Assembly: GCF_000737315.1 (NCBI RefSeq)
Contig: NZ_JMCB01000001.1
Coordinates: forward strand, 248,001 to 312,000
DNA length: 64,000 bases
Direction of reading: 5' to 3'
Source: Hyalangium minutum
GTDB taxonomy: Bacteria > Myxococcota > Myxococcia > Myxococcales > Myxococcaceae
Numbering within the stretch: the stretch's first letter is position 1; the number at the start of each line of letters is the position of its first letter. This document shows positions 32,232 to 57,823 of this stretch, piece after piece. Below the pieces are notes generated by a model that saw nothing but the letters and a program-made list of their open reading frames with translations, made no database searches and was not told where the DNA came from. The translations under genes were made by a program, and so were the position numbers.

Positions 32232-32236
32232 AAGAG

Positions 32237-32253: not shown

Positions 32254-32318
32254 CTAAGGGCTGGCATCCCGGCTTCGAGAGGAACCGGGTTCAACCCCTC
32301 CCTGAAAGAAGGCACGTC

Positions 32319-35564: not shown

Positions 35565-37115
35565 TCACGCCGTGGACTCGAACCACGGAACTTCCTGTGA
35601 GGAGCCCACGGCTGGCAGCAGCTCCAGCATGGAGAGCAGCCGCTGGATGTCGAGGGGCTTGTCCATGCAGGGGTTGCGCGCCGTGCTCAAGAAAGCGCGC
35701 GTCTCCTCCGTGAAGGCCCCGCCCGTCATGAAGATGACCCGCTGGGCCTGCTCCGGAGCCAGCCGCTCCAGTTCCTGGTGAAACTGGGAGCCGCTCATCT
35801 CCGGCATCATCAGATCGCAGAGGATGGCGTCAAAGCGATGGCCCGAGGTGACATGCGCCAGGGCATCCTGGGCCCGCTCGAACGTGATGACCTGGTGCCG
35901 AGTCCCCAGCAACCGCCCCAGGGCCTTGCCCACGGCCGCCTCGTCGTCGAGCACGAGCACTCCCAGCTTCTTGCGGGGCTCCCTCGGCTTCGACTCCTGC
36001 ACGAGGTCCTGCTCCTGGGCCACGCGAAGCTGGATCCAGAACGTGCTGCCCTGGCCAGGCTCGCTGTCCACGCCGATGCCGCCGCTCATCTCGGTGACGA
36101 GGCGGCGGCAGATGGACAGCCCCAGCCCAGTGCCCACCCCCACCGGCTTCGTGGTGAAGAAGGGCTCGAAGATCCGCTCGCGCAGCTCCGGCGGAACGCC
36201 CGCCCCGGTGTCGTGGATCTCCACCCGCACCCACTCACCGACCCGCCGGGTCACCACCCGAATCTCATGCGCGTCCCTGTAGCCCTCGGGGATGGCGTGG
36301 GCCGCGTTGATGATGAGGTTGAGGAGGACCTGCCCCAGCCGCGCCTCGCTGCCGTGCGCGGAGGGAATCTCCCCGTAGTCCTTCACGAGCTGGGCCCGGT
36401 GGAAGAGCTGGTTGTGCGCCATGCGCAGCGCCGAGTCCAGCACCCGGTGCACATCCGTCGGGCCGAAGTTCTGCCCCTCGGGGCGGGAGAAGATCTTGAT
36501 GTCCCGGATGATGTCCCGGATGAGCCCGGCGCACGAGAACGCCTCGCGCAGCGCCTGCTGCGTCTCCTGAGAGCCCCCCTCCGCCTCGACGTTGGACAGG
36601 CCGAACTCCAGGTTCATCATCACCGAGGCGAGCGGGTTGTTGAGCTCATGCGCCACGCTGGCGGCGAGCATGCCCAGCGAGGCCAGCCGATCCGACAGCA
36701 TCAGCTGCTCCTGCATCGTGCGGCGCTCGGCGCGCAGCTCCGCCTCGCGAAGCTCGCGGGCCACGGCCGGGCCCAGCCGCCCCAGCCGATCCTTGAGCAC
36801 GAAGTCATGGACGCCCGCCTTCATCGCGGCCACCGCCACGTCCTCGCCGATCTTCCCTGACACGATGAGGAACGGCACATCCAGCCCTCGCTGCCGCACC
36901 AGGGCGAACGCGCTCAGTCCGTCGAACTGCGGCAGCGCATAGTCCGCGATCACCGCGTCCCAGGTCCCAGCGCTCAGCGCGCGCTCCAGCCCCTCACGCG
37001 TCTCGACGCGGGAGTGCGAGACGTCGTAGCCGCTGCGCCGCAGCTCCCGCAGCAACAGGGTGGCATCGTCATCGGAGTCCTCCACGAGGAGCAACCGCAG
37101 AGGCTGAGCGCTCAT
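35565..37115 (-). CDS. Hybrid REC-HisKA-HATPase-REC kinase
   Basis: LVEDSDDD/IADYALP; VAHELNNPL; GTGLGL; C-terminal VLDDE/ILCDLMMP. Confidence 0.95.
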   Translation of the reverse strand: MSAQPLRLLLVEDSDDDATLLLRELRRSGYDVSHSRVETREGLERALSAGTWDAVIADYALPQFDGLSAFALVRQRGLDVPFLIVSGKIGEDVAVAAMKAGVHDFVLKDRLGRLGPAVARELREAELRAERRTMQEQLMLSDRLASLGMLAASVAHELNNPLASVMMNLEFGLSNVEAEGGSQETQQALREAFSCAGLIRDIIRDIKIFSRPEGQNFGPTDVHRVLDSALRMAHNQLFHRAQLVKDYGEIPSAHGSEARLGQVLLNLIINAAHAIPEGYRDAHEIRVVTRRVGEWVRVEIHDTGAGVPPELRERIFEPFFTTKPVGVGTGLGLSICRRLVTEMSGGIGVDSEPGQGSTFWIQLRVAQEQDLVQESKPREPRKKLGVLVLDDEAAVGKALGRLLGTRHQVITFERAQDALAHVTSGHRFDAILCDLMMPEMSGSQFHQELERLAPEQAQRVIFMTGGAFTEETRAFLSTARNPCMDKPLDIQRLLSMLELLPAVGSSQEVPWFESTA

Positions 37116-37157: not shown

Positions 37158-38312
37158 TCAGTCATGGTTGGGCTCCCGGGGAGCTCGGGGGGCTGAGAGG
37201 TGAGGGAGCTCGTTCAGGGTGAAGAAGAAGCAGGCGCCCTGGCCCGGCTGGCCCTCGCCCCAGATGTGCCCGCTATGGCGGCGGATGATGCGCTGCACGG
37301 TCGCCAGCCCTACGCCGTTGCCCTCGAACTCCGCCTGCGAGTGCAGCCGCTGGAAGACTCCAAACAGCTTGTGCTGATAGGCCATGTCGAAGCCGGCGCC
37401 ATTGTCCTTCACGAAGTAGGTGCGGCGCCCTTGCTCCTGCGTCACGCCGAACTCGATCTCTGCCACGGGGCGCTCGCGCGTGAACTTCCAGGCGTTGCCC
37501 AGCAGGTTCTCCAGCACGGAGCGCAGCAGCTGCGAGTCGCCCCGGTCCACCAGCCCCTCCTGCAGCGTGAGGTGCACGGTGCGCCCGGGGTACTGGACCT
37601 GGAGCTGCTCGGAGACGGCCTTCGCCAGGGCCGTCAGGTCGCACCGGGTGGAGACCAGCGGCGTGCGGTGGACCCGCGAGAGCGCCAGGATGCCGTCAAT
37701 GAGCTCGGACATGCGCTGGGTCGAGCCGAGGATGCGCCGCAGATAGTCCTGGCCTGTCGCGTCCAGCTGGGCAGCGCAGTCGTCTGTCAGCGCTTCACTG
37801 AAGCTGGTGATGGCGCGCAGCGGAGCGCGCAGATCATGCGCCACGGAATAGGCAAAGGACTCCATCTCCCGGTTGGCGAACTCGAGCTGAGCGGTGCGCT
37901 CGGCGATGCGACGCTCGAACTCTTCGTTCGGATGGCTTGGCTTCTCGTCTTCGCTCCGGCCGGCCTCGTCCAGGCCCTTCACGAGCGACATGCCGCCAAT
38001 GACCTGCCCCTGCTCATCACGCAGGGGGATGCCATTGCAGCGCACGCGCCTGCCCTCCGGCATGTTCCCGTTGCGGATGAACAGCTCCAGTTCCTGGACT
38101 TCCTCTCCCTTCAACGCTTGCCAGAGGGGCAGCTGTTCCATGCCGCTGGGGCCTACCAGTTGCTCGGCATCAGGACTGGAGTAGACGAGGGTACCCCTGG
38201 CATCGGCGATGACGAGCCCCTCGGAGAGGGCGGCCAGAGCCGAGTGAAGGAGCTGCCGGTGCCCGAGCTGGAGGAGCGCTCCTTCGAGTGGGTTGTGTTC
38301 GGGGTGTGGCAT
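37158..38312 (-). CDS. PAS sensor histidine kinase
   Basis: PAS region, SVAHDLRAPLR, NAWKF, DNGAGF, GVGLAT; start inferred at ATG 38312. Confidence 0.93.
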   Translation of the reverse strand: MPHPEHNPLEGALLQLGHRQLLHSALAALSEGLVIADARGTLVYSSPDAEQLVGPSGMEQLPLWQALKGEEVQELELFIRNGNMPEGRRVRCNGIPLRDEQGQVIGGMSLVKGLDEAGRSEDEKPSHPNEEFERRIAERTAQLEFANREMESFAYSVAHDLRAPLRAITSFSEALTDDCAAQLDATGQDYLRRILGSTQRMSELIDGILALSRVHRTPLVSTRCDLTALAKAVSEQLQVQYPGRTVHLTLQEGLVDRGDSQLLRSVLENLLGNAWKFTRERPVAEIEFGVTQEQGRRTYFVKDNGAGFDMAYQHKLFGVFQRLHSQAEFEGNGVGLATVQRIIRRHSGHIWGEGQPGQGACFFFTLNELPHLSAPRAPREPNHD

Positions 38313-38495
38313 GACATTCCAAGGTGCAAAGTCGGTCCCCCAACATACGCGAGTCCTCGTACAACTGTCATGTGGTAGACGCTCCAGGCCCACCGGGACA
38401 GCGCGTCCGGCTCCGGGTGACTGCGCGTCATTCGCACGTGTCCGCCGCTGGAGCACCTCCTGCGCAAGAGGACTTTCATTTCTTGTCTGCTTCTT

Positions 38496-38612
38496 CTTTC
38501 GCATCAGCGCTGCACAGGAAATGAACTCCTGACGCTCTTTTCACACTCGCGCTGCACAGCCATGGAAATTGATTGGGCGTGATAGCAATTTGAATTCTTC
38601 ACTTGTTATAAT
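38496..38612 (+). promoter_or_regulatory. Promoter region of the NRPS-PKS: GCGCTGCACAG direct repeat and extended -10
   Basis: GCGCTGCACAG at 38507 and 38549 (42 bp apart); TGTTATAAT at 38604-38612 in an AT-rich tract. Confidence 0.55.
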
Positions 38613-38645: not shown

Positions 38646-41600
38646 ATGAAACATCCCTCTCATTATCCGCTCTCGTTCGAGCAGGAACGCATGTGGTTCC
38701 TGTCCAAGCTTCACGGTGCCGCTCCGGCCTTCCATGAACGTGCGGGGGCCTGGCTCCAGGGGCCGCTCGACGTATCCTTGTTAAAACAAACAATCGCGGA
38801 AATCACGCGGCGGCATGAGATCCTCCGTACAAGCCTTGTCGAGGTGGGTGAGCAGCCCTCACAGCGAATTGCTCTCGAATGCGACATCCCCTGGCGAGAA
38901 GAAGACGCAAGGACGGCCAGAGAAGAGGGAGCACAAGGGCTCGAGGAGAAGGCACTGACCCTCGCTCGCGAGGAAGTGTCACGCCCGTTGGATCTGGAGC
39001 ACGGCCCTCTCTGGCGGGTCTGCCTGGTGCGGCTGAATCACACACGGCACCTGCTCGTGGTGACAATGCATCACCTCATCTCGGATGGAGACTGGACCCT
39101 GGGCCTGTTCTTCTCCGAGCTCTTCTCCCTGTACACGGCACGCCGTGAGGGTCAATCAGCGGACGTTCCTGCAATCCATCGGCAATACAGGGATCATGCG
39201 CTCTGGCAGCGCGAGCAACTGAGCAAGCAGACAACCGCTCGGCAGCTTGCCTGGTGGCAAGAACAGCTCCAAGGGCTGCCCCCGGCCCTGGACCTGCCGG
39301 TGGATCGGCCTCGCCCCTCCATCCAATCCTTTGCAGGAGGAACAGCGGAACGGCTTGTCTCTCCAGAGCTTACACAGGCCGCGCGAGCCCTGGCGGAGAG
39401 GGAGGGTGTCACGCTCTTCGCGGTGCTGCTCTCGGGCCTGCAGGCCGTGCTCTACCGCTACACCCACCAGGAGGATGTCCCCGTGGGGACGCCCCTGGCT
39501 GGGCGGCACTCTCCAGACGTGAAACATCTCCTGGGCTATTTTGGCAATCCTGTCGTACTGCGTGGGCGGGTAGGAGATGACCCCTCTTTCCGTCAGTTCG
39601 TCCTCCGGACTCAGCAAGACTTCACCCAAGCGCAGGCCCATGGAGATCTGTCTTTCAAGGATCTCGTTGAGGCGCTGTCACCCGCGAGAGACCTGAGCCG
39701 GCCTCCGCTCTTCCAGGTGCTCTTTGCCCTGAGAGACCCATGGCCCTCCACCCTCACGAGCCCGGCCCTCACCCTCACTCCCGTCGATATCGAGCTGCCA
39801 TTCGTCGCCTATGAGCTCATGTCGTCCGCCCGAGACCTGGGGACCGGCCTGAGCCTGAAGCTCGAATACAACCGCGAGCTGTTCCTGCCCGAGTCCGCCG
39901 CACAGCTCCTGGGGCACTGGGAGGCGTTGCTGCGCGGAGCCCTCGCGGCGCCGGAACAGCGGCTGTCCGAGATCCCGCTGCTGTCCGCCGAGCAAACGCA
40001 CCAGCTCTTGTATGGGTGGAACCAGACGCAGGCGGATTATCCGAAGGATGTCTCCATCCATGAGGCGTTCCAAGCCCAGGTCCGCTGCACTCCAGAGGCC
40101 GTGGCTTTGGTGTTTGGCGACCGAAAGCTCACGTACCGGGAGCTGGACCGACGAGCCCATCGGCTCGCCTGCGCTCTCCGCCAGCGGGGAGTGAAGGCCG
40201 AGAACCGGGTGGCCCTCTTCACCCAGCGCTCGCCCGAGACGATCATCGCCATGCTCGCCATTCTGGAGGCAGGGGGGGCCTATGTGCCTCTCGACCCAGA
40301 GCTTCCCGCCGAGCGCCTGGCCTGGATGATCGAGGATGCCCAGGCCAAGGTGGTGGTGGCAGTGGGCTCGTCCCCGCTCCCTCTTCCTGTCGAGGGCCTC
40401 GAGCTCCTCCGCGTCGACACAGTGGGAGAGCCTCCCGCCGACGAAGAGCTGCCCCCACTGCCGAGCGGGGTCCGTAGCAGCCACCTCGCGTACGTGCTCT
40501 ACACCTCGGGCTCGACGGGCACTCCGAAAGGTGTCGCCATTACCCACCGCTCCGTCGTCCAGCTTGCCTTCCACGCCGACCTGAGCCCCGACGACCACGT
40601 CCTGCAGAGCACGACCTACTCCTTCGACGTGTCTGTGTATGAGATTTGGGGCGCGCTCCTCAATGGCGCCCGCGTCGTCATGGGTGCGAGAGATCTCACC
40701 CTGTCTGCCCGGGCACTCCAGGAGGAGCTGCGGCGTCAGGCCATTACCGTGTGCTGCCTGACCCCTGCGGTGTTCAACAACCTGGTCCGGGAGACACCGT
40801 CTCTCTTCCGGCCCGTCCGGGCTGTGATCATCGCGGGCGAGGCCCTGGATCCCCACTGGGTCCGAGTGGCGATCGAGGAGGGGCACGCGCAGCTCTTCAA
40901 CGGGTACGGTCCCACCGAGGCCACGGTCTTCACCCACCTCCACCCCATCACCGAGGTGCCGGAGGGTGCCACCTCCATCCCGATCGGACGGCCCCTGCCG
41001 AATGTGCAGGCCTACGTGCTCGATCGGCACCTGCAGCCCGTTCCTCGTGGCGTGCCGGGAGAGCTCTATCTCGGCGGAGAAGGTCTGGCCCGAGGGTACT
41101 GGCGTCAGCCTGAGCTCACGGTGGAGCGATTCATCCCCCACCCCTTCTCTCGAGAGCCCGGGGCACGGCTCTACAAGACCGGGGACCTCGTCCGATATCT
41201 CCCAGGAGGGCTCCTCGACTTCCTGGGGCGCATCGATCATCAGGTCAAGGTTCGCGGCTTCCGCATCGAGCTGGGAGAGATCGAAGCCGTGCTCGACGAT
41301 CACCCGGCGGTGAGGCAGGCCGTCGTCGCGGCACGAGTCCTCGGCTCGAATGACAAGCAGCTCGTGGCCTACGTCGTCCCGCAGACGAGCCCGCCCCCCT
41401 CCATCACGGAGCTGCGCGAGTATCTGGCGCGGAAGCTGCCGTCCTACATGGTGCCGGCCTTCTTCGTCATGCTGGAGGCCCTGCCTTTGAACCCCAATGG
41501 CAAGGTGGACCGCCGGGCCCTGCCCGTCCCCGATGGGACACGCCCCGAGTTGGCGCAGGAGTTCGTCGCCCCTCGCACCGCCACGGAGCAGGCGCTGGCG

Positions 41601-44600
41601 GCCATCTGGCGGGAGTGCCTCTCCCTGGACCGTGTCGGGCTCGAGGATGACTTCTTCGCGCTGGGAGGACACTCGCTGCGCGCCCTGCAAGTGATGGCGC
41701 GCATCCGCCAGCACTTCCAGGTGGAGATTCCCCTCCGCGCCTTCTTCTCCCATCCCACGCTGGCCGGGCTGGCGGGCCTGCTGAGCCAAGCTCGAAGCAA
41801 GGAGCAGATCGCTGCATCGATCCCCTCCGCCCCCCGGGGCGCCGTCGTGCCCCTCTCGTTCGCCCAGGAGCGGCTCTGGTTCCTTCACCAGCTTGCCCCG
41901 GAGAGCGCCGCATACAACTACCCGGCGTTCTTCCGGGTGCGCGGGCCGCTCGACGCCGCCGTCCTGGAGAAGAGCCTCCAGGCGCTCGTCTCCCGTCACG
42001 AGTCCCTGCGAACCCGCTTCTCCGAGGTCGATGGGCAGCCCGTGCAAGTGATTGCGGCGCACCTGCCGCTGCACCTCGAGCGTGTCGACCTGCGGGAGCT
42101 GCCGCGCGAAGAGCAGCAGCGGGAAGTTCATCGGCGCGCGGAGGCCAGCGCGAGACAGCCCTTCGATCTCCACCGGGCCCCCCTCCTGCGAGCGAGCCTG
42201 CTGACGCTGGGTGATGACGAGCACGTGCTGCTGCTCAACCTCCACCACTCGGTCACGGACGGCTGGTCCATGGACGTGCTCTACAGCGAGCTCGAAGCCC
42301 TCTACGGCGCATGGGCCAGGGGTCAGCCTCCCGCCCTGCCGGCTCTCGCGCTGCAGTATGCCGACCATGCAGTCTGGCAAAGGCAGTGGGCCGAGACGCC
42401 AGCGATGGAGGAGCAGCTCACGTGGTGGAAGCAGCAGCTCGCAGGGGCCCCTCCGGTTCTGGAGCTGCCTACGGATCGGCCTCGGCCTCCTGTCCAGGAC
42501 TTCCGCGGCGCGCTCGTGCCCTTCCGGATCGGCAAGGAGACCACCGCGGCGCTGCGGGCCCTGGCAACCCAGGAGCGAGTCACCCCCACGATGGTGTTGC
42601 TCGCCGCGTTCCAGGCGCTGCTCCACCGCTACACCGGCCAGGAGGAGTTCCTCGTCGGCATGCCTCACGCCAGCCGGGAGCGGCCGGAGACGGAAGGGGT
42701 GGTGGGCTTCTTCGTGAACACCCTGCCCATTCGGGCCGATCTCTCAGGAGCGCCGTCCTTCCGGACACTGCTGGCGCGCGTCCGAGAGACGAGCCTGGGC
42801 GCTCTCGAGCACGCGGAGGTCCCCTTCGAGCAGCTGGTGAAGGCGCTGCGGCCCGAGCGAGATCTCAGCACGCTCCCGCTGGTCCAGGTGATGTTCGCGC
42901 CTCAGGTCTCTCAGCTGGGGCGGCTGAAGCTGCCCGGGCTGGACATGGAGCCGCTCGCGCTGGATCCCGGCCGCGCTACCTTCGACCTCACCCTGCTGTC
43001 CTGGGAGGATCACGACGCGCTGGCGGGCCAGTGGGAGTACTCCACGGCCCTCTTCGACCCGAGCACCCTCGAGCGCATGGCGGGGCACCTGTGCAGGCTC
43101 CTGGAGGGAGCTGTCCGGCAGCCGGATGCGCGACTCTCGGGACTGCCGATGCTGGGTGAAGAAGAGCGGCAGCGCCTGCTGGTGCAGTGGAATGACACCG
43201 CCGCCGTCTACCCCCGCGACTCCACGATTCCTGAAGCCTTCGCCGAGCAGGTCCTCCGCGCTCCGGAGGCCGTAGCCGTGCAGTTCGGCTCGCGGCAGCT
43301 CACCTACCGGCAGCTGGACCTGCGCGCCAACCAGCTCGCGTGGCGGTTGCGCCGCATGGGCGTGGGCCCGGACTCGCGCGTGGCGATCGCCATGGAGCGC
43401 TCCCTGGAGCTCGTCGTCGCCCTGGTGGGCATCCTCAAGGCGGGCGGCGCCTATGTCCCTCTCGACACCGACTACCCTCGCGAGCGACTGGCCCTCATGC
43501 TCGAGGCCGCTCAGCCCGACGCCCTCGTCACCACCAAGGCCCTGTTGCCGAAGCTCCCCGCGCAGGGGCTGCGTCACCTGCTCCTGGACGAGGCCCGGCT
43601 GGAAGAGGAGCCAGCCTCCGCCCCGGACTCGGGAGTGACGGCTCGAAACCTCGCGTACATCGACTTCACCTCCGGCTCCACCGGCCGGCCCAAGGGGGTC
43701 TGCATCGAGCACCGCTCGGTGCTGCGGCTGGTCAAGAACATCCGCTACGCCGAGCTGGGACCGGGCGAGACGCTCCTGCTGGCCTCGCCTCTCTCCTTTG
43801 ACGCCTCCACCTTCGAGCTCTGGGGCAGCCTGCTCACTGGTGCCCGCCTCGCCGTCTTCCCGCCCCACCCGCCCGCGGATCCGCTGGAGCTGACCGAGGT
43901 GATCGCTCGCCATGGCGTCACCTGCCTCTGGCTGTCATCCGGCCTCTTCAACCAGGTGGTGGACGTGGCCGCACAGCGGCTGGCGGGCGTGCGCCGCATC
44001 CTCGTCGGCGGGGATGTGCTGTCCGCGCCCCACGTTCGCCGCATGGTGGACCTGGGAGTGGCCGTGACGAACGGCTACGGCCCCACGGAGTGCACCACCT
44101 TCGCGGTGACCTACTCCATGGAGCCACACTCCCGCGTGGAGGATCCGGTGCCGCTGGGACGGCCCATCTCCAACACCACCGTCTATGTCCTGGATGGGCA
44201 CCTGCAGCCAGTGCCGATCGGCGTGGCGGGCGAGCTTTACCTCGGCGGGGATGGACTGGCGCGCGGCTACGTGGGCCAGCCCGAGCTCACCGCGGAGCGC
44301 TTCGTGCCGGACCCGTTCGGCCTCGAGCCCGAGGGCCGCCTCTACAAGACCGGAGATCGGGTCCGCTGGCGGGGCGATGGCACGCTCGAGTTCCTCGGCC
44401 GCCTGGACACCCAGGTGAAGGTGAGAGGCCACCGGATCGAGCTGGCAGAGGTGGAGGCCGCCCTGCTCGCCTTCCCCTCCGTGTCCAAGACGGTGGCGGT
44501 GGCACGCGAAGACGCCCCCGGTCAAAAGCGCCTGGTGGGCTACGTCGTCGCCCCGCCGGAGCTGGACATGGCCGCGCTGCGCGCCCACCTCGCGGAGCGC

Positions 44601-47600
44601 CTGCCCCGGTACATGCAGCCCTCGGCGCTCGTGCGGATCGAGGAGCTCCCCCTCACACTCACCGGAAAGATCGATCGCCGGGCGCTGCCCGCCCCCAGCA
44701 CGTCCCGGCCCGGAGCCGAGCAGGGCTTCGTGGCGCCGCGCTCGGAGCTCGAGCAGGCGCTGGGCGCCATCTGGCAAGAGGTGTTGGGCCTGGAGCGCGT
44801 GGGCGTCGATGATCCGTTCTTCGAGCTCGGCGGCCACTCGCTGCTGCTGGCCCAGGTCCGGGCCCGGATCCGCGAGCGGCTGGAGCGAGACGTCGGGATG
44901 GTGACGCTCTTCCAGTACCCCACGATCCGCCAGCTGGCCGCCCACCTGAGTCCCGGCGAGAGCCCGGCGCAGAGGGTCTCGGCCCCTCAGGAGGAAACGA
45001 GCTCCGTGCTCGCGCGCCAGGATCACGCCATCGCCATCATCGGCATGGCCGGCCGCTTCCCGGGGGCCCGGAGCCCACGAGAGCTGTGGGAGCTGTTGAG
45101 GGAGGGCCGCGAAGGGCTGAGCCGCTTCACCCCAGAGGAGCTCCAGGCCTCTGGTCTGCCGCCAGAGCTGCTGCGCGACCCCTCTTTCGTTCCGGCCCTG
45201 GGCATGGTCGAGGAGGCCGCTCACTTCGACGCGGCCTTCTTCGGGTACTCGCCGCAGGAGGCGCAGCTCACCGATCCTCAGCAGCGCCTCTTCCTCGAGT
45301 GTGCCTGGGAGGCCCTGGAGGACAGCGGCTACGATCCCCACCGCTACCCGAGCGGCATTGGCGTGTTCGGCGGCGCGGGGGTACCCCGCTACTGGTTGCA
45401 GCGGGTGGCCTCACTGGGCTCTCCGCGAGGGAGCTCGGGCGACTATCGGGCGATCGTCGGCAATGGCAACGACTTCCTTGCGACGCGCGTGGCGTACAAG
45501 CTGGGCCTGCGAGGCCCCGCGCTGAGCTTGCAGACGGCCTGCTCGACCTCGCTCGTGGCCATCCACCTGGCCTGCCAGAGCCTCCTGTCCGGCCAGTGCG
45601 ACATGGCCCTCGCCGGGGGCGTGTCCCTGTTCTCCATGGACCCCTCCGGCTATCCCTACGAGGAGGGTGGGATCCTCTCTCCCGATGGCTATTGCCGGCC
45701 CTTCGATGCGCAGGCCCGAGGGACCGTTCCCGGCAGCGGAGTGGCCGTGGTGGTGCTCAAGCGGCTGGAGAAGGCACTCGCGGATGGAGACACCGTGCAT
45801 GCCGTCATCCTCGGCTCGGCCATCAACAACGACGGCGCCCAGAAGATCGGCTACACCGCCCCGAGCGTCGAGGGCCAGATCGAGGCCATCGTCATGGCCC
45901 AGACTGCGGCGGGAGTGAGCCCGGAGACCCTGAGCTATGTCGAGGCTCACGGGACGGCCACCCCGCTGGGAGACCCCATCGAGGTCGCGGCCCTCACCCA
46001 AGCATTCCGCCGAGCCACGGCTGCGAAGCAGTCCTGCGCCCTCGGCTCGCTCAAGAGCAACCTGGGACACCTGGACGCCGCGGCCGGAGTGACCGGCCTG
46101 CTCAAGGTGGCCCTCTCGCTCGAGCATGAGCTCATCCCCGCCACCCTGCACTTCCAACGGCCCAACCCGGAGCTTGCGCTCGAGGACAGCCCCTTCTTCG
46201 TGAATGCCGAGCCGCACCCGTGGCCGCGAGGAGAGTGGCCCCGCCGCGCTGCCGTGAGCGCTTTCGGCATCGGTGGAACCAACGCCCACGCCATCCTGGA
46301 AGAGGCCCCCCCACGCGCGCCGTCCGGCCCGTCGCGCCCCTGGCAACTGCTGCCCCTGTCCGGCCGCACCGCCACGGCGCTCGAGGCGATCACCGACAGG
46401 CTGGGCGAACACCTGCGGCGACAGCCAGAGCTCCCCCTGCCGGATGTGGCGTTCACCCTCCAGCAGGGACGAGGGGCCTTCGAGCACCGCCGAGGGGTGG
46501 TCTGCCAGGAGCGTGACGAAGCAGTCTCCGCGCTGGCTTCACGCGAAAACGCGAAGGTCTTCGACGGAGCCGCCCCGTCGCAGGCGTCCGAGGTGATCTT
46601 CATGTTCCCGGGCGGGGGCACCCAGCACGTGGGAATGGGGCGGGAGCTCTACCAGGGCGAGCCCGTCTACCGGGAGACGCTCGACCGGTGCGCCGGCCTC
46701 TTCGCCCAGGAGCTGGGCCGCGATCTGCGCTCGCTGCTGTTCGCACCGGAGCAGGAGCGCGCCGAGGCCACCTCCCAGCTCCTGCGCCCCTCTCTCAACA
46801 TGGCCTCCATCTTCTCCACCGAGTATGCGCTGGCGCAGCTCCTGCTCTCGTGGGGACTGCGACCCTCGGCGCTGACCGGACACAGCCTGGGAGAGTACGC
46901 AGCCGCCACGCTCGCCGGTGTGCTCTCGCTCGAAGACGCGGTGGCCCTCGTGGCCCTCCGCGGGCGGCTGTGCGACTCGATGCCCGAGTCCGCCATGTTG
47001 AGCGTGCCACTGTCAGAGCAGGCGCTCTCCGCCCGATGGGCTCAAGGGGTCTCTGTGGCGGCGATCAATGGGCCCGCGCATTGCGTGGTCGCGGGCCGCA
47101 GAGAGGCGATCGAGCAGTTGGAGGCACGGCTGCACGCCGGGGGCATCGAGGCCCAGCGTCTGTGGCTGGCGGGAGCCTCGCACTCGCCGCTGGTGGAGCC
47201 CTTCGCGGCCCGGCTGACCGAGCGCGCGGCCTCGATGAAGCTCCAGGCCCCTGTCATCCCCGTCGTCTCCAACCTCACGGGCACCTGGATGACCGACGCG
47301 GACGCGCGCGATCCCTCCTACTGGGCCCGCCACCTGCGAGGAACGGTGCGGTTCGCCGACGGGCTCTCTGCCTTGCTGGCGCGGCCCGCTCCCGTGCTCA
47401 TCGAGGTGGGGCCCGGCAGGGTGCTGGCATCCCTGGCGCGCCTCCATCCGGAAGCAGGAAAGGCCCGCCTGGTGACGAGCACCTTGTCCACCCCCGGCTC
47501 CGGCCGCAGCGACTGGGAAGCCCTGTTGGGCGCAGTGGGGAAGTTCTGGTGCGTAGGAGGCGAGCTCGACTGGGCGGCCTTCTCTCGGGACGAGCGGCGG

Positions 47601-48746
47601 CAGCGCGTGCCCCTGCCCACCTATCCCTTCGAGCGAGCGGAGCACCTCCTCGGGGCCCCCCAGAACGCCCAGCCTGCCTCCGCGCCCATCCTGAAGGCCC
47701 CCCCTGTGGGCCGGGATGCGCTCGAGCAGGGGCTGGCGGAGATCTGGAGGGAAGTGCTCGGCGTCCACTCCATCCAACCGGACGATCACTTCTTCGATGC
47801 CGGCGGCTCCTCGCTCATTGCCTTGCAGCTTCGCACTCGAGTGAGAGCACAGCTCGGCGTCATGCTGCCCGTCCACGCATTGGTCGAGAACCCCCGGTTC
47901 ACGCAGCTGCTGGACGCGGTCCGGAGAGCGAGCACGGCCGCCCCCTCGTCTCCCGAGAGGCCAGCCACGCCGCAGGGACAGCTGCGGGTCTGCCTCCAGG
48001 AGGGAGCTGCCGGGTCGCCCCCGCTCTACCTGGTCCAGCCTATCGGTGGAACGGTCTACACATATATGGGGCTGGCCCGGCAGCTCGGCCCTCAGCAGCC
48101 GGTGTATGCCTTCCGCGCTTCGGGTATCGAGCCTGGGGAGCCCATCCATCCCGACGTGCCCACCATGGCGGCGCACTACATCGCGGAGATGCTGAAGCAT
48201 CAGCCTCGAGGGCCCTTTCAGTTGGGCGGGCACTCCTCCGGAGGTGCCGTCGCCTACGAGATGGCCCGCCAGCTCGTTCAGAGAGGCCTGGAGGTGTCTC
48301 CCGTGCTGCTCGTGGACACCCCACCGCTGCCCCTGAGCCATCTCCAGGTCGGCCAGCCCGAGGATCTGCTGAAGCTGATGGCTCCCTTCCGGGAGCGAGC
48401 TCCCGCAGCCTGGGCGGGCATGGCCAAGGCGGTCGCCAAAGACTCGCCCTTCCGGGAGCTGCTCATGGTGCATGCCCACGCCCTGGCCGCCTACACCCCC
48501 AGACGCAGCCAGCTCCCCCTCCTCTACATCCGTGCCAAGGAGCGAAATGAGGTGCTGGAGCACCACGCTGAGCAATGGTGGATGGACCACACGGACGGTG
48601 CGTTCTCCATGCACACCGTTCCGGGCGATCACTTCACCCTGATGGAGTTCCCCCACATCGAGGCGGTGGCCCGCGTCGTGCGACAGCACCTCATCGGAGG
48701 GGGGGAGCGAACGGACCCTCCCAGCGAAGGCGTGCGAGGCCATTAA
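38646..48746 (+). CDS. Hybrid NRPS-PKS: C-A-T-C-A(Val)-T-KS-AT-ACP-TE
   Basis: C: MHHLISDG, LHHSVTDG. A: YTSGSTGTPKG, DFTSGSTGRPKG, YGPTE, NGKVDR/TGKIDR. T: LGGHSL twice. KS: TACSTS, EAHGT, KSNLGH. AT: GHSLG. ACP: AGGSSL. TE: GGHSSG...GDH. Confidence 0.97.
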   Translation: MKHPSHYPLSFEQERMWFLSKLHGAAPAFHERAGAWLQGPLDVSLLKQTIAEITRRHEILRTSLVEVGEQPSQRIALECDIPWREEDARTAREEGAQGLEEKALTLAREEVSRPLDLEHGPLWRVCLVRLNHTRHLLVVTMHHLISDGDWTLGLFFSELFSLYTARREGQSADVPAIHRQYRDHALWQREQLSKQTTARQLAWWQEQLQGLPPALDLPVDRPRPSIQSFAGGTAERLVSPELTQAARALAEREGVTLFAVLLSGLQAVLYRYTHQEDVPVGTPLAGRHSPDVKHLLGYFGNPVVLRGRVGDDPSFRQFVLRTQQDFTQAQAHGDLSFKDLVEALSPARDLSRPPLFQVLFALRDPWPSTLTSPALTLTPVDIELPFVAYELMSSARDLGTGLSLKLEYNRELFLPESAAQLLGHWEALLRGALAAPEQRLSEIPLLSAEQTHQLLYGWNQTQADYPKDVSIHEAFQAQVRCTPEAVALVFGDRKLTYRELDRRAHRLACALRQRGVKAENRVALFTQRSPETIIAMLAILEAGGAYVPLDPELPAERLAWMIEDAQAKVVVAVGSSPLPLPVEGLELLRVDTVGEPPADEELPPLPSGVRSSHLAYVLYTSGSTGTPKGVAITHRSVVQLAFHADLSPDDHVLQSTTYSFDVSVYEIWGALLNGARVVMGARDLTLSARALQEELRRQAITVCCLTPAVFNNLVRETPSLFRPVRAVIIAGEALDPHWVRVAIEEGHAQLFNGYGPTEATVFTHLHPITEVPEGATSIPIGRPLPNVQAYVLDRHLQPVPRGVPGELYLGGEGLARGYWRQPELTVERFIPHPFSREPGARLYKTGDLVRYLPGGLLDFLGRIDHQVKVRGFRIELGEIEAVLDDHPAVRQAVVAARVLGSNDKQLVAYVVPQTSPPPSITELREYLARKLPSYMVPAFFVMLEALPLNPNGKVDRRALPVPDGTRPELAQEFVAPRTATEQALAAIWRECLSLDRVGLEDDFFALGGHSLRALQVMARIRQHFQVEIPLRAFFSHPTLAGLAGLLSQARSKEQIAASIPSAPRGAVVPLSFAQERLWFLHQLAPESAAYNYPAFFRVRGPLDAAVLEKSLQALVSRHESLRTRFSEVDGQPVQVIAAHLPLHLERVDLRELPREEQQREVHRRAEASARQPFDLHRAPLLRASLLTLGDDEHVLLLNLHHSVTDGWSMDVLYSELEALYGAWARGQPPALPALALQYADHAVWQRQWAETPAMEEQLTWWKQQLAGAPPVLELPTDRPRPPVQDFRGALVPFRIGKETTAALRALATQERVTPTMVLLAAFQALLHRYTGQEEFLVGMPHASRERPETEGVVGFFVNTLPIRADLSGAPSFRTLLARVRETSLGALEHAEVPFEQLVKALRPERDLSTLPLVQVMFAPQVSQLGRLKLPGLDMEPLALDPGRATFDLTLLSWEDHDALAGQWEYSTALFDPSTLERMAGHLCRLLEGAVRQPDARLSGLPMLGEEERQRLLVQWNDTAAVYPRDSTIPEAFAEQVLRAPEAVAVQFGSRQLTYRQLDLRANQLAWRLRRMGVGPDSRVAIAMERSLELVVALVGILKAGGAYVPLDTDYPRERLALMLEAAQPDALVTTKALLPKLPAQGLRHLLLDEARLEEEPASAPDSGVTARNLAYIDFTSGSTGRPKGVCIEHRSVLRLVKNIRYAELGPGETLLLASPLSFDASTFELWGSLLTGARLAVFPPHPPADPLELTEVIARHGVTCLWLSSGLFNQVVDVAAQRLAGVRRILVGGDVLSAPHVRRMVDLGVAVTNGYGPTECTTFAVTYSMEPHSRVEDPVPLGRPISNTTVYVLDGHLQPVPIGVAGELYLGGDGLARGYVGQPELTAERFVPDPFGLEPEGRLYKTGDRVRWRGDGTLEFLGRLDTQVKVRGHRIELAEVEAALLAFPSVSKTVAVAREDAPGQKRLVGYVVAPPELDMAALRAHLAERLPRYMQPSALVRIEELPLTLTGKIDRRALPAPSTSRPGAEQGFVAPRSELEQALGAIWQEVLGLERVGVDDPFFELGGHSLLLAQVRARIRERLERDVGMVTLFQYPTIRQLAAHLSPGESPAQRVSAPQEETSSVLARQDHAIAIIGMAGRFPGARSPRELWELLREGREGLSRFTPEELQASGLPPELLRDPSFVPALGMVEEAAHFDAAFFGYSPQEAQLTDPQQRLFLECAWEALEDSGYDPHRYPSGIGVFGGAGVPRYWLQRVASLGSPRGSSGDYRAIVGNGNDFLATRVAYKLGLRGPALSLQTACSTSLVAIHLACQSLLSGQCDMALAGGVSLFSMDPSGYPYEEGGILSPDGYCRPFDAQARGTVPGSGVAVVVLKRLEKALADGDTVHAVILGSAINNDGAQKIGYTAPSVEGQIEAIVMAQTAAGVSPETLSYVEAHGTATPLGDPIEVAALTQAFRRATAAKQSCALGSLKSNLGHLDAAAGVTGLLKVALSLEHELIPATLHFQRPNPELALEDSPFFVNAEPHPWPRGEWPRRAAVSAFGIGGTNAHAILEEAPPRAPSGPSRPWQLLPLSGRTATALEAITDRLGEHLRRQPELPLPDVAFTLQQGRGAFEHRRGVVCQERDEAVSALASRENAKVFDGAAPSQASEVIFMFPGGGTQHVGMGRELYQGEPVYRETLDRCAGLFAQELGRDLRSLLFAPEQERAEATSQLLRPSLNMASIFSTEYALAQLLLSWGLRPSALTGHSLGEYAAATLAGVLSLEDAVALVALRGRLCDSMPESAMLSVPLSEQALSARWAQGVSVAAINGPAHCVVAGRREAIEQLEARLHAGGIEAQRLWLAGASHSPLVEPFAARLTERAASMKLQAPVIPVVSNLTGTWMTDADARDPSYWARHLRGTVRFADGLSALLARPAPVLIEVGPGRVLASLARLHPEAGKARLVTSTLSTPGSGRSDWEALLGAVGKFWCVGGELDWAAFSRDERRQRVPLPTYPFERAEHLLGAPQNAQPASAPILKAPPVGRDALEQGLAEIWREVLGVHSIQPDDHFFDAGGSSLIALQLRTRVRAQLGVMLPVHALVENPRFTQLLDAVRRASTAAPSSPERPATPQGQLRVCLQEGAAGSPPLYLVQPIGGTVYTYMGLARQLGPQQPVYAFRASGIEPGEPIHPDVPTMAAHYIAEMLKHQPRGPFQLGGHSSGGAVAYEMARQLVQRGLEVSPVLLVDTPPLPLSHLQVGQPEDLLKLMAPFRERAPAAWAGMAKAVAKDSPFRELLMVHAHALAAYTPRRSQLPLLYIRAKERNEVLEHHAEQWWMDHTDGAFSMHTVPGDHFTLMEFPHIEAVARVVRQHLIGGGERTDPPSEGVRGH

Positions 48747-48857
48747 TCTTTCTTGTTAGGAATTGATTGATTCACAAGTCTTTCCTGATCAACTGACCTG
48801 TCGCGTGCCAGTCCAAGAGAAGGCGCGCGGGACCTGGCTGTAATAAGGTGCCCGCGC

Positions 48858-50711
48858 ATGACACTTCCGGCAGCCCTCTCGCCCCCCTCTGGCCTGCCTG
48901 CTCAAGAGGGAATGGCAATCTTTGACGCCTCCGGCCGGCTCACGGAGTGCAGCGCTGAGTTCGCTCAGTTGCTCGGAGAGAATCCTCAGAAGCTCCTCGG
49001 CCGCGCGTATGAGGAGCTCCCTCTCTCCTCGGGCTCCCCCGCCCCGGCGCTGATCCGGCAGGCACGAGAGACGGGGAGAGCCGCCTCCCAGAACCTCGTG
49101 GTGCGTGACACCCTCCTGCGCGTCAGCGCCCAGCCGCTCCTGGCTCGGGAGGGCGGCGCGCCCCAGGTGGCCGTGACCCTCCTGGCGCTCGCACAAGAGC
49201 AGGCACCGCGGGAGCGCATGCAGCAGCTCGAGACGGATCTCGCCCGGTTCCGCTCGCTGTTCGAGAACCTGCCGCTGATCTTCTGGACCGTCCAGCAGGA
49301 CGGCACGCCTGACTACATCAACTGGTTCTGGTTCGCGTTCACGGGCCTCTCTCCGGGCCAGGCGGATGGCGAGGCGTGGAAGAAAGTCACCCATCCCGAG
49401 GATCTCCCCGAGTTCGTCCGCCGATGGGGTCACAGCCTGGCCACCGGCGAACCCTGCGAGCTGGAGTGCCGCTTCCGCCGTCACGATGGAGCCTGGATCT
49501 GGCACCGTGTTCGCGCCTTCCCGCTGCGCGATGCCGAGGGCCGCATCCTCTCGTGGATTGGCTGCAGCACGGACATCCAGGAGAGCCGGAACGCCGTCGA
49601 GCGGGCGGAGGAGGAGCGGCGCAAGGCGGAGCAGGTGCGCGCGGCACTCGACACCTTCTTCGATGCCGTCCCAGCGGGCATGGCGCTCTTCGACGAGAAC
49701 CTGCGCTACACGCGCATCAACCGCCCCCTGGCGGAGATGAACGGCCTGTCCGTCGAGGCCCACATCGGGCACACGCCGCGCGAGCTGTTCCCGAACCTGT
49801 CCCCCCACCCGGAGGACCTCTTCCGACAGGTCCTCACCACGGGGGAGACGGTCACCTTCGAGAGCACCGGCAACTCGCAGGCCAGCGGCGAGGAGGGCAC
49901 CTGGCTGGCGTGCACGGCACCGGTGTGTGCACCCGATGGCCACCGACTGGGCGTGGTCATCGTGATCCTGGATATCTCGCACCGCAAGCGCGCCGAGGCC
50001 GAGCGCGATCGGCTCATTGCCGCGCTCGAGCGCAGCAACAAGGAGCTCGATCAGTTCGCCTATGTGGCGAGCCACGATCTCAAGGCCCCTCTGCGGGGCA
50101 TCACCAACCTGGCGCAATGGATTGGAGATGACCTGAAGGACATCATGCCCGACGAGACACGCGGGCAGATGCGGCTGCTGACGGGGCGGGTCCACCGGAT
50201 GGAGGCGCTCATCAACGGCATCCTCGACTACAGCCGCGCCGGCCGGGTGCGCGACAAGCCCGAGAGCGTCGACGTGGGCGCGCTGCTGAACGAGACCATC
50301 GAGCTGCTCTCGCCAGCGCCTCCCGCCTCCATCCAGGTGGAGACCCGCATGCCCGTGCTGCACTGCGAGCGGGTGCCGTTCCAGCAGATCTTCCTCAACC
50401 TCATCAGCAACGCGCTCAAGCACGCCATGCGCCCGGATGCGCTCGTGCGAGTGCGTTGCTCCGAGACGGCCAACGGCTGGGAGTTCGCCGTCGCCGACAA
50501 CGGACCTGGCATTGCTCCCGAGTACCACGAGCGGATCTGGGGAATCTTCCAGACGCTGCGGGCGAGGGATCAGGTCGAGGGGACAGGCATCGGCCTGTCG
50601 GTGGTCAAGAAGATCGTGGAGGCCCGCGGAGGCTCCGTCCGGGTGGAGTCCGCCGAGGGCCAGGGCGCCACCTTCTTCTTCACCTGGCCCACATCCACCC
50701 CCAAGAAGTGA
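48858..50711 (+). CDS. Multi-PAS sensor histidine kinase
   Basis: PAS domains (YINWFW...HPEDL; INRPLAEMNG), VASHDLKAPLRGI, NALKH, DNGPGI, GTGIGL. Confidence 0.95.
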   Translation: MTLPAALSPPSGLPAQEGMAIFDASGRLTECSAEFAQLLGENPQKLLGRAYEELPLSSGSPAPALIRQARETGRAASQNLVVRDTLLRVSAQPLLAREGGAPQVAVTLLALAQEQAPRERMQQLETDLARFRSLFENLPLIFWTVQQDGTPDYINWFWFAFTGLSPGQADGEAWKKVTHPEDLPEFVRRWGHSLATGEPCELECRFRRHDGAWIWHRVRAFPLRDAEGRILSWIGCSTDIQESRNAVERAEEERRKAEQVRAALDTFFDAVPAGMALFDENLRYTRINRPLAEMNGLSVEAHIGHTPRELFPNLSPHPEDLFRQVLTTGETVTFESTGNSQASGEEGTWLACTAPVCAPDGHRLGVVIVILDISHRKRAEAERDRLIAALERSNKELDQFAYVASHDLKAPLRGITNLAQWIGDDLKDIMPDETRGQMRLLTGRVHRMEALINGILDYSRAGRVRDKPESVDVGALLNETIELLSPAPPASIQVETRMPVLHCERVPFQQIFLNLISNALKHAMRPDALVRVRCSETANGWEFAVADNGPGIAPEYHERIWGIFQTLRARDQVEGTGIGLSVVKKIVEARGGSVRVESAEGQGATFFFTWPTSTPKK

Positions 50712-50726: not shown

Positions 50727-51137
50727 ATGCGAACCCTGAATATTCTGCTCGTTGAAGACGATGAAGTGGACGTGATGAACGTCCAGCGGTCGTTCAAGAA
50801 GAACAACATCAGCAACCCCCTCTATGTCGCGGGCAATGGCGTCGAGGCGCTGGAGATGCTGAGGAGCGGCTCGGTGCCCTCTACGAATCGGCTCATCCTG
50901 CTGGACATCAACATGCCGAAGATGAACGGCATTGAGTTCCTGCGGGCCTTGCGCGCGGACCCTGCGCTCCGCACGAGCCCGGTGGTGGTGCTCACCACCT
51001 CCAACGACGACAAGGACCGGATGGAGAGCTTTCAGCTCAACGTGGCGGGCTACCTGCTCAAACCGGTGACCTTCAACTCGTTCGTGGATCTGATGCTGGC
51101 CCTCAACAAGTACTGGATGCTGGTGGAGATGCCCTGA
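50727..51137 (+). CDS. Single-domain response regulator (Rcp1-like)
   Basis: LLVEDDEVD, LLDINMPKMNG, VVLTTS, YLLKP. Confidence 0.95.
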   Translation: MRTLNILLVEDDEVDVMNVQRSFKKNNISNPLYVAGNGVEALEMLRSGSVPSTNRLILLDINMPKMNGIEFLRALRADPALRTSPVVVLTTSNDDKDRMESFQLNVAGYLLKPVTFNSFVDLMLALNKYWMLVEMP

Positions 51138-51569: not shown

Positions 51570-52568
51570 ATGCACCTGCGATGGATGACTCTCGGCCTGA
51601 TCGTGTGGGCCTGGGCCTGGCCCACCTCCTCAGAGGCTTGCAGTTGCGAGACAGGCTCACCGGACCTCCTCACGAACCTTCGAGAGGCACGTGAAGAGGC
51701 CTCCACGATCTACTACGGCCGCGTCGTGTCGATCGATGAATCCCTTGTCGCATCAGTCGAGGTGCTCGAGGTCTTCAAGGGGAATCTCGCTGTCGGAACG
51801 AAGCTCTCGGTGTCATACGAGCACCCCTGCGCCTACCCCTTCGATTCCGGGGAGACCACGCTGATCTACGCGGACGAAGACCCTTCGCAGGTGTTCTTGT
51901 GCACTCGGACCCGGCGTGCATCGAAAGACGATGTCGAACTCGAATGGCTGCGGACAGGGAAACCGCCGGCCGTCCCCGTCGCACTGCAGCGCGAGACGGT
52001 GGCCTGCCAATCTTGCAGCCTGGAGACTGTCACCGCGTCCCTTGTGGGACCTCTGTCTGGAGACTCCAGAAACTCGCCTCTACCGAGCCAGCAACCACTC
52101 GAGGCCTTCCGCGAGGTCCGCCCTTTCTGGACGGCAAGCCCTTCACGTCTGGATGACAACGGCCGACGGACAGCCGTCGGGCTCTCGTCCGATCTCCGTG
52201 CCTTCGAGCTCGTTCAGACGCCGTACCGCACCACGCGAGAAGCATGTCAGCAACGTGTGGTCAGGCGGTGGTGCGAGAAGCTGGAACCCTCCCCTGAGGA
52301 GAGCTCCGGCGCTCCAGCACTCCGGTGTCTGAACCCCGGCCCGGAAGAAGAAGTCTGCAACGAGACGCAAAGCCGCGCCGCAAGCTGGGGCTCGCTGGAG
52401 AAGATCCGCGCCGCCAAGTGCATGTGGCGCAATCCCGTGAGCCCGTATTGCGAGCTGACGAAGCGTCCTCAGCCTCTTCCAGGGAGTGCTCGAAAATCCC
52501 CGCTCCTGCGCTGCAGCCCCGGGTTTGACACGAGGACCTCCTTCTGCAGCGTCCAGGACGCCCCCTGA
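51570..52568 (+). CDS. Secreted Cys-rich protein with TIMP/NTR-like N-terminal domain
   Basis: Signal peptide ending SEA then CSC; TIYYGRVVSI...VEVLEVFKG...CAYPFDSGETTLIYA...CTRTR. Confidence 0.75.
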   Translation: MHLRWMTLGLIVWAWAWPTSSEACSCETGSPDLLTNLREAREEASTIYYGRVVSIDESLVASVEVLEVFKGNLAVGTKLSVSYEHPCAYPFDSGETTLIYADEDPSQVFLCTRTRRASKDDVELEWLRTGKPPAVPVALQRETVACQSCSLETVTASLVGPLSGDSRNSPLPSQQPLEAFREVRPFWTASPSRLDDNGRRTAVGLSSDLRAFELVQTPYRTTREACQQRVVRRWCEKLEPSPEESSGAPALRCLNPGPEEEVCNETQSRAASWGSLEKIRAAKCMWRNPVSPYCELTKRPQPLPGSARKSPLLRCSPGFDTRTSFCSVQDAP

Positions 52569-57773: not shown

Positions 57774-57823
57774 CCCCCTGCACCTCCACGCGAGCAGGCG
57801 TGAGGTGTTCGTTTGCCCAGAAC

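Follow-up and report, generated by a model that had tools for sequence, protein, structure and literature searches.

The stretch of DNA analyzed here (the window: 64,000 nucleotides, positions 248,001 to 312,000 of contig NZ_JMCB01000001.1 of Hyalangium minutum) carries one large gene for a hybrid of nonribosomal peptide synthetase (NRPS) and polyketide synthase (PKS), hereafter the megasynthase, followed by the genes of a histidine kinase (HK) and a small response regulator (RR) on the same strand (Table 1). An identical protein is recorded for JMCB01000001.1 of assembly GCA_000737315.1, and JMCB is given as H. minutum DSM 14724T in the paper describing H. ruber. Open reading frame (ORF) calling on the window DNA and Pfam returned exactly the boundaries and the domain order of an initial annotation made from the sequence alone: two modules of condensation (C), adenylation (A) and thiolation (T) domains, followed by ketosynthase (KS), acyltransferase (AT), a third carrier protein (CP, there called ACP) and thioesterase (TE), thus C-A-T-C-A-T-KS-AT-CP-TE. 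The ORF of 3366 amino acids (aa) begins at the first possible start codon after the upstream stop, so that a longer N-terminus is impossible, and its GC content at third codon positions (GC3) of 0.84 is in line with the coding pattern of the neighboring genes. Pfam assigned two Condensation, two AMP-binding(+C) and three PP-binding domains, the N- and C-terminal KS domains, the KS-AT linker, Acyl_transf_1 and Thioesterase, and found no ketoreductase (KR), dehydratase (DH), enoylreductase (ER) or methyltransferase (MT) in the megasynthase. Since the linkers are short (about 60 aa from AT to the third carrier and about 25 aa from there to TE), there is no room for a hidden reductive or MT domain. 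All catalytic motifs are legible in the translation, and the Val predicted for module 2 agrees with its canonical A-domain code; in these respects the initial annotation holds. A-domain codes were extracted with a GrsA guide, for which the control gave DAWTIAAICK as expected, and the TE triad was positioned through alignment to AB3403.

Table 1. Domains of the megasynthase and features next to it in the window.
Feature	Position	Strand	Remarks
Megasynthase (NRPS-PKS)	38646..48746	+	C-A-T-C-A-T-KS-AT-CP-TE
C1, N-terminal condensation	38646..39995	+	HHLISDG (142), then unusual Asp (DGDWT); C5 motif GYFGNPV replacing FVNT
A1	40023..41525	+	code DVYCIAGVFK; Val only via the hyalanone argument
T1 (peptidyl carrier protein, PCP)	41568..41780	+	GGHS, Ser1010
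C2, internal condensation	41838..43190	+	HHSVTDG (1200); canonical LCL-like motifs HHSVTDGWS, FFVNTLPIR
A2	43203..44690	+	code DAFWLGGTFK = canonical Val code
T2 (PCP)	44733..44954	+	GGHS, Ser2065
KS	45018..46325	+	Cys2299 (TACSTS), His2435 (EAHGTAT), His2482 (NLGH); triad complete
AT	46578..47525	+	GHSLG, Ser2747; Arg in LRGRL; FMFPGGGTQ and GASH family-specific
Third carrier, PCP-like	47703..47930	+	FFDAGGSSL, GGSS, Ser3055
TE, type I, CorA-type clade	48003..48695	+	GHSSG Ser3196, Asp3224, His3339
Hybrid HK-RR	35565-37115	-	divergent, upstream of megasynthase
Histidine kinase	37158-38504	-	divergent, upstream of megasynthase
Imperfect palindrome GCGCGGGACCT-loop TGGCTGTAATA-AGGTGCCCGCGC	48816..48857	+	directly before the PAS-HK start codon
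Soluble three-PAS histidine kinase (PAS-HK)	48858-50711	+	Pfam; directly downstream of megasynthase
Stand-alone receiver-domain response regulator, 136 aa (RR136)	50727-51137	+	Pfam

The core chemistry of such a line is known from CorA, a single A-T-C-A-T-KS-AT-ACP-TE gene of Corallococcus exiguus SDU70 (Zhu et al., ACS Cent Sci 2024, PMC10979478), and the new part of the locus is its N-terminal C domain and a lead to a receptor. Based on sequence comparison, the megasynthase is assigned to the CorA family of dipeptidyl-beta-keto-acid synthases through its KS, AT, third carrier and TE. KS, AT and TE are 65, 56 and 50% identical to those of the Corallococcus protein P0358, which was taken as CorA-type by its architecture and its corB-like neighbor and is not SDU70 CorA itself, while the NRPS halves share only 40–46% identity. 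The domain order of P0358 (2890 aa, locus L083, found in Corallococcus sp. Z5C101001 and C. silvisoli) is the one published for CorA, and a protease gene of the Trypsin_2+PDZx2 type (DegP/Q-type, corB-like) lies 4 kb upstream of P0358. The window TE is 48% identical to a stand-alone Corallococcus TE (P0254), whereas the TEs of outgroup NRPS-PKS lines reach only 35–38%. In addition, the family shares unusual motifs. Its ATs carry FxFPGxGTQ in place of GQGxQ and xxSH or xxFH in place of HAFH/YASH, and the window AT has FMFPGGGTQ and GASH at these sites; the third carrier is PCP-like in all members, with GG[ST]S (here GGSS, not LGxDS); the TE starts with LVQPIGGTVYTY and carries GGHSSGG. These features of AT, carrier and TE are absent from ordinary hybrid lines. 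Thus the initial annotation, which did not recognize a characterized cluster, needs revision: a close match with a known product exists at the family level in the form of a CorA homolog, while the megasynthase is not an ortholog of CorA and possesses an extra N-terminal C domain.

Relatives were gathered with three partial megasynthase queries, including the PKS-TE half. Full-length orthologs (81–86% identity) were found only in Hyalangium genomes (H. versicolor, H. gracile and Hyalangium sp. s54d21, which is H. ruber) and in Hyalangium-like metagenome-assembled genomes (MAGs), represented by several metagenomic contigs. Among the best 77 genome loci the complete architecture is limited to this group, and the other loci encode generic multimodular lines with 40–60% identity per domain. 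With the PKS-TE half as query, the best matches at full coverage were proteins of the order A-T-KS-AT-CP-TE or A-T-C-A-T-KS-AT-CP-TE, which come from Nannocystis, Corallococcus, Streptomyces and metagenomes. A literature search for the exact architecture string gave no match.

The megasynthase resembles CorA in being one gene with two amino-acid modules, one unreduced KS-AT-carrier module and a terminal TE, which is the minimal clade I/III architecture with a single PKS extension and no reductive domain. The second residue is branched-chain (Val/Ile) for CorA, and the window A2 carries a Val code. However, CorA starts with an A domain, whereas the window line starts with a complete C domain and has two C domains in total. 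Furthermore, no corB-type gene lies near the megasynthase, to which the PAS-HK and RR pair is linked instead; co-clustering with corB, a DegP/Q-family serine protease gene, is described as typical mainly for Corallococcus (PMC10979478). A third difference from the CorA-type loci concerns a small SnoaL/NTF2-like gene directly 3' of the megasynthase in Nannocystis (L079, 15441-15875), a MAG (L082, 18456-18893) and Corallococcus (L083, 16549-17103), which is lacking downstream of the window megasynthase and in the other Hyalangium loci. It could encode an auxiliary cyclase or dehydratase for pyrazinone formation and is not mentioned in the part of the coralinone paper considered here (PMC10979478). 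The Nannocystis exedens locus is unusual in another way as well: at L079 7725-15403 an A-T protein (765 aa) is followed by an A-T-KS-AT-CP-TE protein (1800 aa), and Pfam finds no condensation domain at all.

For CorA, it is proposed that a dipeptidyl beta-keto acid is released and decarboxylates spontaneously to a dipeptidyl methyl ketone, whose free N-terminal amine cyclizes; oxidation then yields a 5-methyl-2(1H)-pyrazinone (PMC10979478). The corA gene alone is reported to yield these coralinones in E. coli BAP1, in Myxococcus xanthus and with the purified protein; A1 prefers Leu over Met over Phe and A2 prefers Ile over Val (PMC10979478). By analogy with these experiments, from which hydrolytic release, decarboxylation and cyclization are carried over, the product of the megasynthase is probably, with modest confidence, a CorA-type pyrazinone with an unblocked N-terminus, formed via the hydrolyzed dipeptidyl beta-keto acid. 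A1 would load an aliphatic amino acid, putatively Val, on T1 and A2 would load Val on T2, C2 would form the dipeptide, and KS would extend it with malonyl, or possibly methylmalonyl, delivered by AT. No reduction would follow. TE would then hydrolyze the dipeptidyl-beta-ketoacyl thioester, the free beta-keto acid would lose CO2 spontaneously to give a dipeptidyl methyl (or ethyl) ketone, the free amine would attack the ketone and the cyclic imine would oxidize. The expected product is a 3-alkyl-6-isopropyl-5-methyl(ethyl)-2(1H)-pyrazinone, a small diffusible molecule of the coralinone/hyalanone type. We infer that the N-terminus stays free, with C1 not acylating, and that the molecule is a signal, which the adjacent PAS-HK/RR pair may sense. 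The initial annotation had foreseen hydrolysis to a beta-keto acid and a peptidyl ketone, for which the closest characterized relative now provides the precedent (PMC10979478), and it overlooked the spontaneous cyclization to a 5-methylpyrazinone that a free N-terminus would allow in a dipeptidyl methyl ketone.

Which extender unit the AT selects is uncertain between malonyl and methylmalonyl, since GASH in the window contrasts with SGFH in the CorA-type protein. Malonyl-specific ATs carry Phe at the position where the window AT has Ser in GASH, and methylmalonyl is for this reason possible. The AT of CorA is described to take methylmalonyl-CoA too, which leads to a 5-ethyl analog (PMC10979478). 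The best solved relative of the window AT is PDB entry 5YDA, followed by ZmaA; 5YDA is probably the broad-specificity splenocin SpnD AT, which would hint at a bulky extender unit. Such a unit was considered and dropped, as the atypical AT motifs are common to CorA-type proteins using malonyl-CoA. Likewise, an antimycin-like reading (AntC/AntD), suggested by the combination of C-A-T-C-A-T with KS-AT-ACP-TE, was rejected, because KR, aryl-starter genes and a crotonyl-CoA carboxylase/reductase (CCR) gene are lacking.

The initial annotation had also put forward another fate of the beta-ketoacyl chain and an analogy. The former is cyclization by the TE, in which the amide nitrogen or an enolate attacks the thioester to form an N-acyl pyrrolidine-2,4-dione, that is a Val-derived tetramate. 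The chemistry is feasible for gamma-amino-beta-ketoacyl thioesters, pyrrolinone formation of the reutericyclin and althiomycin type being examples, and the megasynthase does end in KS-AT-CP-TE without reduction. However, the relatives of the TE lend this outcome no support: the TE falls into the CorA-type clade by identity and common motifs, and the characterized member of that clade gives a hydrolyzed, decarboxylated product (PMC10979478). The solved structures closest to the window TE are those of ordinary type I TEs (AB3403, Vlm2 and fatty acid synthase, FAS), and neither an O-methyltransferase nor any other tetramate-stabilizing tailoring gene lies nearby in the window. We thus regard a tetramate as very improbable. 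The latter is to the precursor logic of epoxyketone proteasome inhibitors. In the lines for epoxomicin and eponemycin (EpxD-E-F), an NRPS, a terminal PKS module and a TE likewise lead to a beta-keto acid that decarboxylates. In contrast to the megasynthase, the EpxD/E/F type requires a C-methyltransferase (cMT) in the terminal PKS module and an enzyme similar to acyl-CoA dehydrogenases. The lack of an acyl-CoA dehydrogenase gene was noted correctly in the initial annotation, and Pfam finds no cMT in the megasynthase either, so that the analogy fails on both enzymes.

A product class of the kind expected from a CorA-type line has been isolated from the same genus. H. ruber s54d21 makes hyalanones A-C, which are 3-isopropyl-5-methyl-6-(ethyl / 1-hydroxyethyl / 1-methoxyethyl) pyrazinones, and an NRPS or PKS-NRPS region containing a Val module was suspected as their origin, with two candidate regions named (PMC10959286). 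Hyalanones and the expected product would share the 3,5,6-trialkyl-2(1H)-pyrazinone core, the 5-methyl group and a Val-derived isopropyl group; they differ in that the hyalanone isopropyl sits at C-3 and C-6 bears ethyl or hydroxyethyl. By analogy with CorA, the 5-methyl group would be the signature of a CorA-type origin. The H. ruber ortholog P0130 is 85% identical to the window protein. On a contig of 625 kb, its annotation begins within C1 at the position corresponding to residue ~381; a frameshift or stop in C1 may be the cause, or else the choice of start codon. Comparison of the Hyalangium orthologs shows that the A1 code is nearly invariant (D[VM]YC[ILM]A[GA]V), whereas the A2 code varies (DAFWLGGTF in H. 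minutum, DTFYVAATF in H. ruber, DAFFLG-TF in H. gracile and DALYIGGTF in H. versicolor). A constant A1 and a variable A2 are consistent with a constant C-3 substituent, residue 1 being Val, and a species-specific C-6. The link to hyalanones needs A1 to activate Val, because, judging by the regiochemistry of the hyalanones, their Val is residue 1. In that case the expected compound of H. minutum would be the Val-Val congener, 3,6-diisopropyl-5-methylpyrazinone (with malonyl as extender C11H18N2O, calculated [M+H]+ 195.149), and given the different A2 code this would be a congener other than those of H. ruber.

The N-terminal C domain is the feature that sets the megasynthase apart, and it raises the enzymological question of what such a domain does in a line that depends on a free amine for product formation, as an N-acylated residue 1 would block the cyclization. 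C-first lines of the CorA family form a new sub-clade with a distinctive N-terminal C domain; apart from Hyalangium, the variant occurs in Sorangium, on metagenomic contigs and in a MAG. Such variants lay outside the published genome mining, because its filter allowed at most one C domain, and Hyalangium is absent from the part of the coralinone paper considered here (PMC10979478). Three proteins of 3413–3440 aa (P0151, P0181 and P0183) show the identical ten-domain order, and the Sorangium proteins (3856–3862 aa) as well as P0158, P0238, P0361 and P0387 have the same order with an additional N-methyltransferase in A2. P0380 combines a C1-type N-terminal domain with another type of TE. The N-terminal C domains of this clade are mutually 40–58% identical (P0387: 33–39%), the window C1 being 40–48% identical to those of P0151, P0181, P0183, P0238, P0361 and P0380, whereas only 29–39% identity is reached to a conventional N-terminal C domain (P0235). 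Their signatures are an acidic residue directly after HHxxxDG (DG[D/E]) and GYFGNPV at the site of the FVNT core motif. In several lineages the second His of HHxxxDG is replaced (MHGLVCDG in Sorangium, MHWMVSDG in P0158 and LHDLVADD in P0387) while the domain is kept. Since these lineages do not form one group on a simple neighbor-joining tree, the His was lost at least twice, which suggests that CorA-family function in them does not require condensation by C1. Seven C-first lineages kept HH. A natural loss of C1 within Hyalangium was considered as well and is unsupported, because the truncation of P0131 is caused by a contig end.

C-first lines with a free-amine product have been described before. 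Classical pyrazinone NRPSs are given as C-A-T-C-A-T-R (PMC10979478), where R is a reductive release domain. The C-A-T-C-A-T-R lines of gut Firmicutes and AusA (A-T-C-A-T-R) of Staphylococcus are dimodular like the NRPS part of the megasynthase, and their dipeptidyl carbonyl also cyclizes via the free N-terminal amine; the former begin with a C domain too, as cited in the coralinone paper (PMC10979478). However, their reductive release leads to an aldehyde, and the resulting pyrazinone has no substituent at C-5, whereas release by a PKS module and TE in the window line would lead to a ketone and a 5-alkyl pyrazinone.

Several points weigh against the assignment of a free-amine pyrazinone to the megasynthase. 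First, its product is predicted from the gene sequence, and the partner of the family comparison is a Corallococcus protein of matching architecture and context and not the SDU70 CorA sequence. Second, predictions based on A-domain codes are weak in the CorA family, because the codes of P0358 are non-canonical; they were of no use for checking the specificity of P0358 or as a calibration for A1. Third, there is a conflict with the hyalanones: their isopropyl group is at C-3 and stems from residue 1, yet the canonical Val code is found in module 2. Moreover, P0130 is only a candidate for the hyalanone synthetase, as the isolation paper names two regions (PMC10959286). Fourth, no DegP/Q-type (Trypsin_2/PDZ) protease is found among the called genes of the window. 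Finally, C1 of Hyalangium has an intact HHxxxDG and invariant motifs, and its ratio of nonsynonymous to synonymous substitutions (dN/dS) of 0.19 compares with 0.17–0.26 in the catalytic domains, where the TE value was inflated by a frame loss in the ortholog of locus L005. Such equal purifying selection argues that C1 does something. The frame loss itself (L005, ~19200-19620, long-read MAG CAVSWU010000002.1) lies within the TE, shortens the ORF to 3207 aa and leaves the TE motifs unalignable; it is probably an assembly indel.

The constraint on C1 also speaks for an N-acylated product: C1 could be an active lipo- or acyl-initiation domain that takes its donor from acyl-CoA or from acyl-ACP of the FAS, so that an N-acyl-Xaa-Val-beta-keto acid would be released and decarboxylate to an N-acyl dipeptidyl methyl ketone. 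The megasynthase starts 8 residues before the C1 core and has no N-terminal docking helix, which favors a small-molecule or ACP donor, the conservation of HH in seven lineages of the clade fits this as well, and an N-protected dipeptidyl ketone was itself bioactive in the coralinone study (PMC10979478). However, C1 resembles elongation C domains rather than starter C domains. Its best matches in the PDB are Txo2, Txo1 and TycC6 with 219–239 bits (TycC6: 219), while the starter domains CDA-C1 (4jn3) and RzmA-Cs (7c1h) score only 56 and 37 bits, and the NCBIfam models agree with a match to the internal C domain of AusA. This resemblance lowers the probability of N-acylation, and the repeated loss of the catalytic His in sister lineages that keep the domain as well as the C-first pyrazinone producers of the C-A-T-C-A-T-R type (PMC10979478) count against it too. 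Furthermore, no acyl-activating enzyme or carrier gene (acyl-CoA ligase, fatty acyl-AMP ligase (FAAL) or ACP) adjoins the six Hyalangium loci, the window included, or two distant C-first loci; acyl-CoAs of primary metabolism remain conceivable donors. Taken together, we consider N-acylation unlikely, though it deserves serious attention among the alternatives. If C1 does acylate, a new class of N-acyl dipeptidyl ketones would be at hand, possibly weak protease ligands or lipophilic signals. One might also speculate that C1 gates or edits the starter residue, or that it decides between a cyclizing (pyrazinone) and a non-cyclizing (N-acyl ketone) output.

Beyond the megasynthase, the neighborhood is that of a stand-alone gene with signaling genes on both sides and no tailoring genes nearby, as the initial annotation had described; the signaling genes are those of the HK and hybrid HK-RR upstream and of the PAS-HK and RR downstream. 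Among the called genes of the 64-kb window we found none for a phosphopantetheinyl transferase (PPTase), MbtH, CCR, acyl-CoA dehydrogenase, acyl-AMP ligase or free carrier protein. The upstream kinases recur at two of the other loci (L002 and L004) and are absent from L001 and L005. In contrast, megasynthase, PAS-HK and RR are linked in the window and at five further Hyalangium loci (L001, L002, L004, L005 and L084), and PAS-HK and RR are 75–82% and 93–96% identical across them. Both flanks of this three-gene block change from locus to locus, with kinases, MbnP/MauG or ABC-C39/JmjC genes upstream and genes for GH18, glutamate dehydrogenase, a peptidoglycan-binding/C39 protein or a surface Ig-like protein downstream, where the window has a radical-SAM (rSAM) region. 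No terminator-like site was found between megasynthase and PAS-HK, and no transmembrane-like segment was found in the PAS-HK. The palindrome between the two genes is conserved in an alignment of five Hyalangium loci; its loop and right arm span a Shine-Dalgarno-like AAGG. Since a T-run is lacking, it is not a classic terminator, and it could be an operator or a hairpin that controls translation.

The three-gene block also bears on a further possibility, namely that the megasynthase is the downstream part of a split line, in which C1 accepts an aminoacyl, peptidyl or aryl group from a carrier that genes elsewhere in the genome supply in trans and a longer peptidyl ketone results. The likeness of C1 to elongation C domains, whose donors are carrier-bound, is in line with this, and at L004 a separate C-A-T NRPS gene (24361-27729) lies ~4 kb downstream of the response regulator. 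However, neither the window nor any of the other four Hyalangium loci has this gene, no such gene is present at either of the two distant C-first loci, the megasynthase has no N-terminal docking sequence, and the three-gene block moves as a unit between neighborhoods. A split line is thus quite improbable.

Coralinones are reported to lack antibiotic activity and to promote aggregation, a knock-out being defective in fruiting-body formation, and their receptor is stated to be unknown by the authors (PMC10979478). The protease-inhibitor or antibacterial role proposed in the initial annotation is thus not what the family suggests, as coralinones act as aggregation morphogens. Few small molecules have been shown to control how myxobacteria aggregate and form fruiting bodies, and CorA-type pyrazinones belong to them. 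The locus extends the CorA family to Hyalangium and to an architectural variant, and it offers a specific receptor candidate, because the PAS-HK/RR pair, with its sensor of a ligand-binding type, stays coupled to the synthase while the flanks turn over. One might speculate that megasynthase, PAS-HK and RR form a self-contained autoinducer circuit and that the PAS-HK is the first identified sensor of a pyrazinone or peptidyl-ketone morphogen in myxobacteria; we regard this as a tentative and rather unlikely idea. The adjacency alone is weak evidence for a receptor role, since genes of this kind are abundant in the genomes of myxobacteria and the Hyalangium species are closely related. The small response regulator of the Corallococcus cor locus gave no significant match to RR136. 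The two distant C-first loci are stand-alone too, and a Ser/Thr kinase-AAA_16-GAF-STAS gene of ~1650–1700 aa lies directly upstream on the same strand (L081, 2484-7574; L082, 2938-7878), a synteny held between proteins that are only ~50% identical. If the receptor circuit exists, this protein would be the sensor for the distant C-first homologs. Equally speculatively, the C-first domain would represent a type of N-terminal C domain with a new function.

Further genes of the window comprise an S8 protease, a streptogrisin-like S1 protease, ABC and TonB-like genes, a radical-SAM/SPASM gene, a cyclase, a GH3 gene and a TetR-RND (resistance-nodulation-division) efflux set. The ORF at 34096-35586 (-) has no significant Pfam match; it encodes a divergent S1 serine protease of the streptogrisin/alpha-lytic type with an NSHC His motif, a GDSGSP Ser motif and a long pro-region, and it adjoins the S8 subtilase gene (32157-34019). 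Both proteases were considered as corB equivalents and rejected, as neither is conserved beside the megasynthase orthologs. At the Corallococcus cor locus L083, a protease with an alpha-lytic prodomain is encoded 6 kb downstream. The TetR regulator gene of the window is followed by a complete RND set (membrane fusion protein, AcrB-type pump and outer-membrane factor; 57174-63791, +), located 8 kb downstream of the megasynthase. Within the flanks examined it is not conserved beside the orthologs and is probably unrelated to the megasynthase. Finally, at 51570-54294 (+), the radical-SAM/SPASM gene (52774-54294) is preceded by an ORF of 332 aa without Pfam match and, in the database gene calls (L078), also by an ORF of 76 aa. 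This region may be a maturase locus for a ribosomally synthesized and post-translationally modified peptide (RiPP) that is unrelated to the NRPS-PKS.

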